A stretch of DNA of 64,000 nt. It comes from Saccharolobus islandicus REY15A (GTDB lineage: Archaea; Thermoproteota; Thermoprotei_A; Sulfolobales; Sulfolobaceae). Where the stretch lies: the NCBI RefSeq assembly GCF_000189555.1, contig NC_017276.1; one strand, written 5' to 3'. Each line of letters begins with the position of its first letter. The stretch's first letter is position 1. Under the pieces are notes generated by a model, which worked only from the letters and a program-made list of their open reading frames with translations, was not told the DNA's origin and searched no databases. This document shows positions 59,733-63,416 of this stretch, piece by piece. The translations under genes were made by a program, and so were the position numbers.

Positions 59733-60722
59733 TTGCAAGGTAATAAAGTGAAATCCTTTACGTTACCGATTATTTCATATGCTGTTCCTACATTTGTGTT
59801 GGTGTATCCATCGTTCTTTGTAGGCTGGCTCAGTGATTCTATGCATTTAGCGTATTGGGAGGTGTTCGCAATAGTTGCTTTACCATTTCTAGGTAGGATA
59901 ATTGGTTCTTTCATATATCAGTTATTCAAAGGTAGTGTAGTTTCTTACTGTTTTCCGTTGCTTGGTTTTTTAGTTGTTCTTCAAAACTTTTTAGTGGCTT
60001 TAGTTTTTGTGAGATTTCTAGTAGGGGTAATATTTGGTCTGTTAACGAGCTATGCGGTTGAGAGTGCTGTAAGAAGTGGTAGAAATGTATTAGTAGGTTT
60101 TACTACCGCAGGTTGGTCTATGGGTTGGGTAATTAGCTATCTTGCGTATTCCTTACTTAAAAATTGGAATGTAATTACAATAAGTGGGATTTTAATAATG
60201 TTTTTAGCGCTGTTTGAGTTAAACAAGGAAGAGTTTAGAGAGAGGGGTATGAGTTCTGTATCTTTTCCCAGGCTTACCTCAATACTGATTTATATATCGG
60301 CGTTAACACCAGCTTTCATTTTGCAAGTTATGCCGAGTTTTTTGGAGACGATAAAGCTTACTTGGCTTATTCTTCCATCCTATTTGTTATCAATTCCAAC
60401 TTACGTGCTTTTACCTATGATTAGTGGAAAAGTAGGAATTAGAAAGGTTTTGGTTATTAGTTCCATTATTGTAATTCTTAGTAGTATTATTACTTTTCTT
60501 CTATTGCCTATGATGGTAATTGTTTTTACTAGTATTGGTCTTGGTATTTTAGGGATAACGCCTAAGTATCTTGCAATTAGAGGTGAAGATCCAAAGAGGA
60601 TGGGTTTGGCTTTGAATATTGGTTCAGTGATGGGTCTCATAGTACCAGTACTGTATGCGCTAATGCCATTTTCACCAGAGTTCTTATTATCAATTTTAAT
60701 GGTTTTGATGTTATTGATATGA
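59733..60722 (+). CDS. MFS-like transporter
   Basis: Many TM segments, GRIIGSF and SGKVGIRK motif A-like loops; start uncertain. Confidence 0.75.
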   Translation: MQGNKVKSFTLPIISYAVPTFVLVYPSFFVGWLSDSMHLAYWEVFAIVALPFLGRIIGSFIYQLFKGSVVSYCFPLLGFLVVLQNFLVALVFVRFLVGVIFGLLTSYAVESAVRSGRNVLVGFTTAGWSMGWVISYLAYSLLKNWNVITISGILIMFLALFELNKEEFRERGMSSVSFPRLTSILIYISALTPAFILQVMPSFLETIKLTWLILPSYLLSIPTYVLLPMISGKVGIRKVLVISSIIVILSSIITFLLLPMMVIVFTSIGLGILGITPKYLAIRGEDPKRMGLALNIGSVMGLIVPVLYALMPFSPEFLLSILMVLMLLI

Positions 60723-60776
60723 AGCAAGATCGGCAGATTTTTAAGGGATAACATGTTAAAGTGATAATGATTAGGG

Positions 60777-60789
60777 ATGAGTCTTTGAC
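60777..60789 (+). other. Candidate +1 programmed frameshift site ATG AGT CTT TGA C
   Basis: The +1 frame (TTT GAC GAA...) is the aRF1 frame; same CTT-TGA-C core as bacterial prfB. Confidence 0.6.
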
Positions 60790-60813
60790 GAATATGCTTT
60801 AAATAAGCAAGAA

Positions 60814-61887
60814 TTGAAGGCACTAATTAAGGAATTGAAGAAATGGAAAGCTCCAGCTACTGTTCTTCTGTCTTTATATATACCACCCGGTAGACCAATT
60901 CCAGATGTGGTTAATCTACTTAGGCAAGAGTACTCCATAGCTCAGAATATAAAGCTCAAGAGGACTAGAGATGCAGTACTTTCCGCGATAGGTGCGGCAA
61001 TAGATAGGCTGAACAAGATACCGAAGATAGATGGTAATGGTTTAGTATTGTTTTGTGGTGAAAATTTCGATACTGAGGATTTCAAATGTTTTATGTTTTC
61101 TCCTCCTGATAAAGTTCCATTATTCTTCTATAGAACTGACAAGGAGTTTCATGTGGAATTTTTGGAGGATATGGTGGAGGATACTGTAGTATATGGTCTT
61201 ATAATTGTGGAGAGGGATGAGGCCACTATAGGTTTACTTAAGGGAACTAGAATAGAAATTTTAGAGGAAATTGAAGGTTTTGTGCCAGGGAAGCATATGA
61301 TGGGAGGACAGTCTCAGAGGAGAATTGACAGAATAATAGACGAAATGTATCATAATTTCTTAAAAGAGGTTGGTGAGAAAGTCAATGCGTATTTTATGCC
61401 TTTTATTCAGACGGGCAAGATGAAAGGTATATTATTAGGTGGTCCAGGATATGCTAAGGAGGATTTCTATAAGGAAGATTATGTTGACTATAGGATAAAG
61501 AATTTAATTTTACAACCCTTAATTGACGTTTCTGATCAAGGTGAGGTTGGATTAAGGGAAATGATAATGAGGGCTGAGGATTTATTAAAGAATCAACAAT
61601 ACGTTGAGGTGGAGAAATTACTAGAGGAATTAAAATACCACTTGGCTAAGGATGATGGATTAATAATATATGGAAAGGAGCAAATTAAAAAAGCTATGGA
61701 AATGGGAGCAGTAGAGGCTATAGTAATTCATGAGGACTCTAGTGATAAAGAGTTAGAGAAATTAGCTCAAGATGCGGAAAATTATGGTGTTAAGGTTTTT
61801 GTGGTTGGTGATGAAGTACCAGAGGCTGAATGGGTTAAAAAAACGTTTAATGGCGTAGTGGGTAAGTTAAGGTATAGGCTATATTAA
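60814..61887 (+). CDS. prf1: Peptide chain release factor aRF1 (main ORF; may be N-terminally extended through a frameshift from 60777)
   Basis: [26 protein letters not shown]. Confidence 0.96.
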
Positions 61888-62520
61888 TTAGATTATTTTT
61901 CTTCTTTTCATTTCCATTAGTATTTTATCTAATGAGATTGGTGGGTCATTTATTCCATAATTTTCAACAAAATTCTTTTTAAGCTCATTTAAGTCTATAT
62001 CCTTTGTTTTCCTTTCTACCAAGATTTTGTTCACTAAGTTAATTTCGTCCTCCCAGTAATTCCAAGGATACATAAACCAGGCCCAGTTTACAATCTCTTC
62101 TGCGTAGTAATCTGGCATTATTTTTGCAGCTGGTTTTATATATTGTAAAGTTGCTGTTTTAACTTCTTTTGGTCCAAAATTTTCCATTACATATTTCCGT
62201 GCTAATTCTATACTATCTCCAGTATCTGTTATATCATCTACTATAATTACGTTCTTATCTGATAGGTCAACCCTAAATGGATATTTCACCTTAGCCTCTG
62301 GAGTATGAGATGCTGTCACTATCCAATGCTCTATCTTTATTGATAATATATCAAAAACACCTAAGACGTCAGCCACTAATCTAGCTGGAACTAAACCTCC
62401 TCTTGCTATCGCAATTATCACATCCACATCATAATTATCATCTTTAATTTTCTCGGCCAATTTAGTAGAAAGACTTACTATTTCATCCCATGTGACTACT
62501 TTCACTGGTATTTTGGGCAA
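61888..62520 (-). CDS. apt: Adenine phosphoribosyltransferase (6-oxopurine PRT-like fold)
   Basis: PRPP motif [22 protein letters not shown]; closely resembles the S. solfataricus APRT; lies next to MTAP. Confidence 0.85.
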
Positions 62521-62603: not shown

Positions 62604-63416
62604 ATGATTGAGGAAAATGAAAAAGCCTCGATAGGAATTATTGGTGGTTCTGGGTTATATGATCCGGGTATTTTTTCGGAGAGTAAGGAAAGAAAAGTAT
62701 ATACACCATATGGAGAACCTAGCGATTTAATAACGATAGGTAAAATCGGAAATAAGACTGTAGCGTTCTTGCCTAGACACGGAAGGAGACATAGAATTCC
62801 TCCTCACAAAATAAACTATAGGGCTAATATTTGGGCATTAAAAGAACTCGGAGTTAGATGGGTGATTTCAGTTTCTGCAGTAGGTAGCTTAAGAATTGAC
62901 TATAAACCCGGTGATTTTGTTATACCAGATCAATTTATAGATATGACAAAGAAAAGAGATTACACCTTCTTCGATGGCCCCGTAGTAGCTCACGTCTCAA
63001 TGGCTGATCCATTTTGTAATAGCTTAAGGAAATTGGCATTAGAGACTGCTAAGGAACTAAATATTAGGACGCATGAAAGTGGTACCTACATATGTATTGA
63101 AGGTCCTAGGTTTTCTACAAGGGCTGAGAGTAGGACGTGGAGAGAAGTTTACAAGGCTGATATAATCGGTATGACGTTAGTACCAGAGGTTAATCTAGCT
63201 TGTGAAGCACAAATGTGTTATGCTACTATTGCCATGGTGACTGACTACGATGTTTTCGCTGAGATTCCAGTTACAGCAGAGGAGGTCACTAGAGTTATGG
63301 CAGAGAATACGGAAAAGGCTAAGAAACTTTTATATGCGTTAATTCAAAGGTTACCAGAAAAACCAGAAGAGGGGTCGTGTTCCTGTTGCAACAGTCTGAA
63401 GACAGCACTAGTATAA
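62604..63416 (+). CDS. mtnP: 5'-methylthioadenosine phosphorylase (MTAP II type)
   Basis: [29 protein letters not shown]-terminal CSCC. Confidence 0.96.

Follow-up and report, generated by a model that had tools for sequence, protein, structure and literature searches.

How is the release factor aRF1 made in a Saccharolobus islandicus-like archaeon in which the gene, prf1, seems to start in the wrong frame? In the stretch of DNA that we analysed (64,000 nucleotides, hereafter the window), a start codon opens a reading frame of only three sense codons, and the body of the factor lies in the +1 frame relative to it. The aRF1 protein is the sole class-I release factor of archaea. A first-pass annotation of the sequence had noticed ATG AGT CTT TGA C ahead of aRF1 and likened it to the autoregulatory frameshift site of the bacterial release factor gene prfB; this sequence is indeed present at 60777-60789, with aRF1 in +1. 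Judging from sequence comparisons, we consider it very probable that expression of prf1 in this genome relies on programmed +1 frameshifting by the ribosome at an NUU-stop site.

The interrupted 5' end of prf1

The protein encoded in the window scores 464 bits against the aRF1_eRF1 model TIGR03676 (cutoff 234.7), matches the Pfam families eRF1_1, eRF1_2 and eRF1_3, and contains in its translation both the GGQ motif (GGQSQRR) and a NIKS-type loop (QNIKLKR). Its closest database protein is an aRF1 of Saccharolobus islandicus (99% identity), and the closest solved structure is that of A. pernix aRF1 (PDB 3agk, E = 2.5e-132). By descent it belongs to the aRF1/eRF1 family and not to bacterial RF1/RF2, and hence not to the prfB family. 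Since the protein is not homologous to RF2, the resemblance of its 5' end to prfB is therefore one of convergence.

Directly 5' of prf1 lies a hydrophobic-looking ORF of 329 aa on the plus strand (59733-60722), which has no Pfam match. On the 3' side prf1 is followed by a phosphoribosyltransferase gene on the minus strand (61888-62520) and then by a PNP/MTAP-type phosphorylase (62604-63416); the phosphoribosyltransferase neighbour was also found in locus L117. Among the more distant archaeal aRF1 homologues, many proteins (P0227, P0234, P0239, P0245 and others) are 700-970 aa long and match the query in two to three separate stretches, which suggests inserted elements such as inteins.

The short upstream frame, ORF0, in which translation would start, reads Met-Ser-Leu-stop at 60777-60788 on the plus strand: ATG at 60777-60779, AGT at 60780-60782, CTT at 60783-60785 and TGA at 60786-60788, with a C following at 60789 (the sequence of 60774-60789 being GGG ATG AGT CTT TGA C). 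The candidate shift site CTT_TGA_C, defined from this sequence and from the 74 distinct cassettes described below, occupies 60783-60789 on the same strand. ORF1, the aRF1 body, extends on the plus strand in the +1 frame from GAC at 60787 to a TAA at 61885-61887, with no other stop codon between these two points. The aRF1 frame opens at 60781, a TGA within ATGA (60778-60780) closing it further upstream; from this opening to the TTG at 60814 it contains no ATG, GTG or TTG. A change of frame is thus limited to codons 2-3 by the upstream TGA of the +1 frame and the TGA of frame 0. Joining Met-Ser-Leu to the frame that begins at GAC 60787 (MSL-DEYALNK...) predicts a product of 369 aa, the same length as had been proposed in the first-pass annotation. 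The 13-mer ATGNNNCTTTGAC occurs a single time in the 64-kb window, at prf1, where 0.12 occurrences are expected anywhere on both strands. The start used by the databases (P0001) and by the ORF list is the TTG at 60814-60816 on the plus strand, giving a product of 357 aa.

Conservation, distribution and loss of the cassette

The comparison drew on 31 aRF1 loci of species-representative genomes and 80 of metagenomic origin, whose 5' regions we anchored on the invariant Trp of ELKKW. A 5' region was available for 109 loci, including the window. The same cassette, with aRF1 in +1, was found in 85 of them; in the remaining 24 the frame is continuous and opens at an ordinary start codon located 22-27 codons 5' of the Trp. 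A single-base indel is the commonest cause of a broken 5' end in one genome; here, the same interruption occurs in 85 independent assemblies (isolates, MAGs and metagenomes) from several families and with varying sequence, which for practical purposes excludes a sequencing or assembly error, a strain-specific indel or a pseudogene. The gene, which encodes the only class-I factor of its host, is otherwise intact, and we regard the chance of such an artefact as negligible. The first-pass annotation had considered that relatives might turn out to have a continuous frame, and had proposed aligning prf1 5' regions across relatives; in that alignment the interruption is no single-strain indel, and the cassette is kept across Sulfolobaceae, Desulfurococcaceae and a third clade.

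Among 74 distinct cassettes, ORF0 starts with ATG in 59, GTG in 13 and TTG in 2. It most often consists of three sense codons (59 cassettes), and otherwise of four (11), five (1) or seven (3), so that the position of the site at codon 3, which had appeared as a weakness in the first reading of the sequence, is in fact the norm. The second codon of ORF0 is AGT in 32 cassettes, AGC in 10, GGT in 10 and GGC in 4, a variation that is synonymous in frame 0. The codon that would occupy the P site is CTT in 26, ATT in 25, TTT in 22 and GTT in 1; the stop is TAG in 58, TGA in 15 and TAA in 1; and the base after the stop is C in 54 and T in 18. The earlier description of the site as an exact prfB core therefore holds for the clade of the window, where CTTTGAC is found, but has to be replaced elsewhere by the general form NUU-stop-Y, with TAG as the commonest stop.

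The codon directly before the frame-0 stop is NTT in 84 of the 85 loci. The exception, L051 (1440-1500), has a variant cassette, ATG AAG TAT TAG C, whose TAT re-pairs poorly in the +1 frame; this locus may be defective, or may reach the +1 frame in some other way. When loci were classified by script, 73 had a cassette without a properly placed in-frame start, 24 had such a start only, 7 had both and one, again L051, had neither. A cassette and a well-placed start are thus nearly mutually exclusive (Fisher p = 2e-16, a value that is only indicative, as related sequences are not independent). A few loci that carry a cassette together with a well-placed in-frame start (L080, L121) are ambiguous. 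In L111 (353-420), a low-coverage metagenome contig that also has the cassette, a TAG replaces the invariant Trp codon of ELKKW (KELSK*RA), probably through a sequencing error.

To map the two forms of the gene we used a maximum-likelihood tree built from 96 distinct aRF1 proteins, with 72 frameshift forms and 23 continuous ones. Four changes of state are sufficient on this tree, whereas shuffled labels needed 20.7 on average and none of 500 shuffles reached so low a number. Frameshift forms comprise all sampled Sulfolobaceae (Saccharolobus, Stygiolobus, Acidianus, Ca. Aramenus and MAGs), the Desulfurococcaceae Desulfurococcus, Staphylothermus and Thermogladius, and a third clade of uncultured relatives. 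Continuous frames are found in Pyrodictium, Tiamatella and Ignicoccus-like sequences, among others of the 24 loci, and also in Aeropyrum, Hyperthermus, Stetteria and an Acidilobales MAG. Outside this group, aRF1 of representatives of all other archaeal lineages begins with an ordinary Met a few residues ahead of helix alpha1; in Infirmifilum DNA, aRF1 has a plain ATG start.

Several of the continuous genes resemble frameshift genes in their 5' ends. L088 and L108 (both 1421-1539), which fall within a frameshift clade, are continuous from a GTG whose G-rich surroundings match those in their frameshift relatives L073 and L086, with an interval from GTG to TTTAG that is exactly one base shorter. 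With one base fewer than these relatives, L088 and L108 therefore look like natural in-frame fusions in which the frameshift has been lost. The continuous gene of L112 (the Acidilobales MAG, 790-850) begins ATG GAA GGT GAA TCC GCA TTT AGT, retaining a GGTGA block and a TTTAG that are spaced as in the cassettes and are possibly the relic of a lost frameshift site.

Where translation begins and how the frame may change

The cassette might bear no relation to the synthesis of aRF1 if the factor were started internally at TTG 60814, Met-Ser-Leu-stop then being an unrelated or regulatory upstream mini-ORF, possibly with reinitiation. This is the start implied by the 357-aa database entry, and some relatives, such as L117 and L009, do have an in-frame ATG or TTG 6-11 codons past the site. 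The TTG itself, however, is not a conserved start: most relatives, L001-L008 among them, have TTA, CTG or CTC in its place. Six loci (L001, L003, L004, L006, L008 and L025) have no ATG, GTG or TTG at all between the site and the invariant Trp. In L117, ATG AGT CTT TGA G is retained despite an in-frame ATG six codons downstream.

The segment between the site and the TTG, moreover, evolves as coding sequence in the aRF1 frame, which would not be expected were translation to begin at the TTG. Over the 20 codons after the site, variation in the +1 frame by codon position is 0.58/0.41/1.05 bits in 14 Sulfolobaceae and 0.68/0.52/1.39 bits in 20 Desulfurococcaceae; this three-base periodicity starts at the first codon past the site, and the intergenic DNA upstream of the cassette is unconstrained (1.4-1.6 bits). 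The residues encoded 5' of the TTG align to A. pernix aRF1 (PDB 3agk), and when the proteins are aligned, the codon at which the two frames overlap in frameshift genes falls on the initiator Met of continuous-frame homologues. In an AlphaFold model of the window ORF piece (mean pLDDT 86.9), helix alpha1 is formed by model residues 8-18 and the TTG codon corresponds to residue 11, so that a start there would fall inside the predicted helix.

In Sulfolobaceae the cassette itself is invariant except for a T/C change, AGT/AGC, which is synonymous in frame 0 and not in the aRF1 frame. An internal start would also leave unexplained why the frame-0 stop always (L051 aside) abuts NTT and why aRF1 is always in +1, and the natural fusions L088 and L108 use the same GTG. 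These observations argue strongly that translation of aRF1 passes through the cassette, and we consider an internal start very unlikely.

The gene-caller N-termini of aRF1 in these lineages are inconsistent, beginning MKKW..., MLLSLY... or MYIPPGRP..., or carrying spurious upstream extensions. In the NCBI record of L114 (511-650), aRF1 is annotated from an ATT, and a cassette GTG TCG AGC ATT TAG C lies about 30 nt upstream. Solved structures gave no N-terminus for the S. acidocaldarius protein, whose chain in 8hku comprises the C-terminal 232 residues only; its gene is Saci_0999 (heat-shock paper supplement).

If translation does pass through the cassette, the change of frame could in principle be made in the RNA: if RNA polymerase slipped and skipped one T of the run, a fraction of the mRNAs would have the ATG and the aRF1 body in a single frame. 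A T run is present at every site, with three T in CTTTGA and ATTTAG and four to five in the TTT-TAG cassettes. The homopolymer runs known to give productive transcriptional slippage are longer, at roughly 7 or more; the run has only three T in about two thirds of the cassettes (CTT and ATT, 51/74) and so falls short of that length. Slippage would need no stop right after the run, yet a stop stands there in all 85 loci. It also explains neither the enrichment of C after the stop nor the avoidance of TAA described next, and we consider slippage unlikely.

The base after the cassette stop is C in 50 of 68 cases, compared with 34.9 expected from the synonymous usage of each locus (p = 1.5e-4, related sequences being counted as independent here as in all our cassette statistics). 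This enrichment holds although the genome prefers GAT over GAC (582 vs 171). C following a stop is a poor termination context in bacteria and eukaryotes. In the window (34% G+C), C follows the stop in just 4 of 64 long ORFs (at least 150 aa), a rarity that fits a poor termination context in this archaeon as well. TAA makes up 1 of 74 cassette stops, as against 42% of long-ORF stops in the same loci, where it is the commonest stop. The preference for C and the avoidance of TAA may be seen as signs of a deliberately weak terminator, a reading that is partly confounded by the Ser or Asp codon read next.

Upstream of the cassette, the TATA-like box TTTTTAAG that the first-pass annotation had singled out is found at 60738-60745 on the plus strand, and its distance to the ATG is fixed in the closest relatives: in L001, L002, L004, L006, L007, L008, L036 and L037 the box starts 38-40 nt 5' of the ORF0 ATG. 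In a Metallosphaera-like clade the distance is 30-31 nt. The usual Sulfolobus spacing between TATA box and start was used to place the transcript start, and the observed spacings therefore imply either a leader of less than 10 nt or a leaderless mRNA that starts at the ORF0 ATG; for the window, the transcript is predicted to begin about 7-10 nt 5' of ATG 60777. A second TATA-like element, TTAAAG at 60756-60761 (plus strand), had been suggested as one that might favour the TTG start. It is not conserved, and we rejected it as a promoter for that start. A scan for sigma-70 promoters and terminators was uninformative for an archaeon.

A G-rich, SD-like block, AGGG, is located on the plus strand directly 5' of the ORF0 start (60773-60776), 6 nt 5' of the shift codon. 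Across the 74 distinct cassettes, positions -13 to -10 from the stop have 0.66-1.35 bits with the consensus R-G-K-G, and the GGG is invariant in 14 Sulfolobaceae. The block is absent from the leaderless Metallosphaera-like clade (cgATG), and Desulfurococcaceae have a second GGTG 8-11 nt 5' of the ATG. The block is a plausible, putative stimulator of frameshifting. Downstream of the site we saw no conserved RNA structure: RNAalifold on 14 Sulfolobaceae retrieved 2 invariant pairs (-0.44 kcal/mol) and the single-sequence fold had z = -0.42. An Rfam scan of 60600-61000 returned only matches at chance level (E > 2).

One feature is constant across the cassettes (L051 aside): an NUU codon followed by U, the A site being occupied by a stop. 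In prfB, the peptidyl-tRNA re-pairs on UUU while the stop awaits its release factor. For tRNAs with G34, re-pairing on UUU retains three pairs (two being G-U) when the tRNA comes from CUU; a tRNA from UUU pairs perfectly, and one from AUU gives up the first pair. A counterpoint is that ATT, present in 25 cassettes, re-pairs less well on UUU.

We propose the following sequence of events for the window. Transcription would begin a few bases 5' of ATG 60777, where the ribosome would initiate and make Met-Ser-Leu; the P site would then hold peptidyl-tRNA(Leu) paired to CUU, with UGA next to it in the A site. UGA followed by C would be a poor termination signal. With aRF1 acting slowly, the tRNA would move by one base, from CUU to UUU, bringing GAC into the A site, and the 369-aa factor would be made; with aRF1 plentiful, the tripeptide would be released and no factor made. 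The aRF1 protein reads all three stop codons, and the site would therefore act as a negative feedback on termination capacity. By analogy with bacterial prfB, the site probably senses the supply of aRF1. What sequence comparison shows is how the cassette is built, how deeply it is conserved, that no alternative start exists, and that continuous-frame relatives use the same start codon; a ribosomal origin of the shift (as opposed to one in the RNA), its efficiency, the feedback and any part played by the G-rich block are inferred.

Known recoding systems and what the cassette would mean

The cassette has several features in common with prfB. In each case a stop codon recognised by the gene's own product interrupts a release-factor gene close to its 5' end, the P site holds an NUU able to re-pair on UUU, the base after the stop is mostly C, and the body of the gene is in +1. 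A conserved downstream RNA structure is seen in neither, both have a purine- or G-rich SD-like block upstream, both traits are widespread with sporadic losses to a continuous frame, and in the window even the heptamer CTTTGAC is identical. There are also differences. The factor is of the aRF1/eRF1 and not of the RF1/RF2 family. ORF0 has 3 sense codons in the archaeal gene compared with about 25 in prfB. Any of the stops is used, TAG most, which fits an omnipotent factor, and ATT and TTT are as common as CTT in the P site. Between the G-rich block and the shift codon there are 6 nt, compared with 3 nt in E. coli, and the leaderless clade has no such block; the aRF1 mRNAs are predicted to have very short leaders or none.

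Closer in protein family are the giant-virus genes Mimivirus R726 and Megavirus mg280, in which an eRF1-like factor is frameshifted at an internal stop, a feature that has been read as autoregulation of the bacterial type (PMC3521657). These viral genes, like the archaeal one, thus encode an eRF1/aRF1-family factor that requires a frameshift at an internal stop. They need, in addition to the frameshift, readthrough of a second in-frame stop (PMC3521657), whereas aRF1 would require one event at codon 3-4, is found in cellular genomes, and has no internal stop in ORF1. According to the 2012 paper describing them, homologues in archaea and eukaryotes lack mechanisms of this sort (PMC3521657). Antizyme of eukaryotic ornithine decarboxylase offers another parallel, a sensor-type +1 shift at the codon before the ORF0 stop that forms an autoregulatory loop. 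It differs in that it senses polyamines and has, in many lineages, a downstream pseudoknot among its stimulators; aRF1 has no conserved downstream structure.

In archaea, the -1 programmed frameshift of Saccharolobus solfataricus fucA1 was described in a 2021 review as the only frameshift case reported (PMC1616953, PMC8211752). It too is a programmed frameshift in a cellular gene, in the same archaeal family. In contrast to the aRF1 cassette it is a -1 shift at an A-AAA-AAT heptamer, known from one species in the gene of a non-essential glycosidase, and it lacks the deep conservation of the cassette. We found no report of a frameshift in archaeal aRF1 in the full-text literature, which leaves out most subscription journals; a 2016 review of frameshifting, a 2013 GeneTack survey and a 2025 prfB survey make no mention of aRF1. 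An ORF0 of three codons would escape frameshift finders of the GeneTack kind.

Beyond the window, we favour with moderate confidence a broader proposal: that a stop-sensing +1 frameshift is the normal and ancestral mode of aRF1 expression in Sulfolobales and many Desulfurococcales, that it constitutes a prfB-like feedback of independent origin, and that archaeal cellular genes thereby gain their first example of +1 programmed frameshifting.

One practical consequence concerns the databases, in which aRF1 of these lineages is mis-annotated, with N-termini that are truncated, extended or given odd start codons; recombinant constructs built on such annotation therefore lack the true N-terminus. 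The cassette would itself report on termination efficiency, stop context and P-site slippage on archaeal ribosomes, including those on leaderless mRNAs, and genetics and cell-free translation exist for S. acidocaldarius, S. islandicus and S. solfataricus. If the proposal is true, archaeal recoding gains a +1 programmed frameshift that is deeply conserved and lies in an essential gene, and release-factor autoregulation by frameshifting is known in bacteria, giant viruses and archaea. Frameshift autoregulation at the factor's own stop would then have evolved at least twice, in unrelated factors, and would represent a general design solution.
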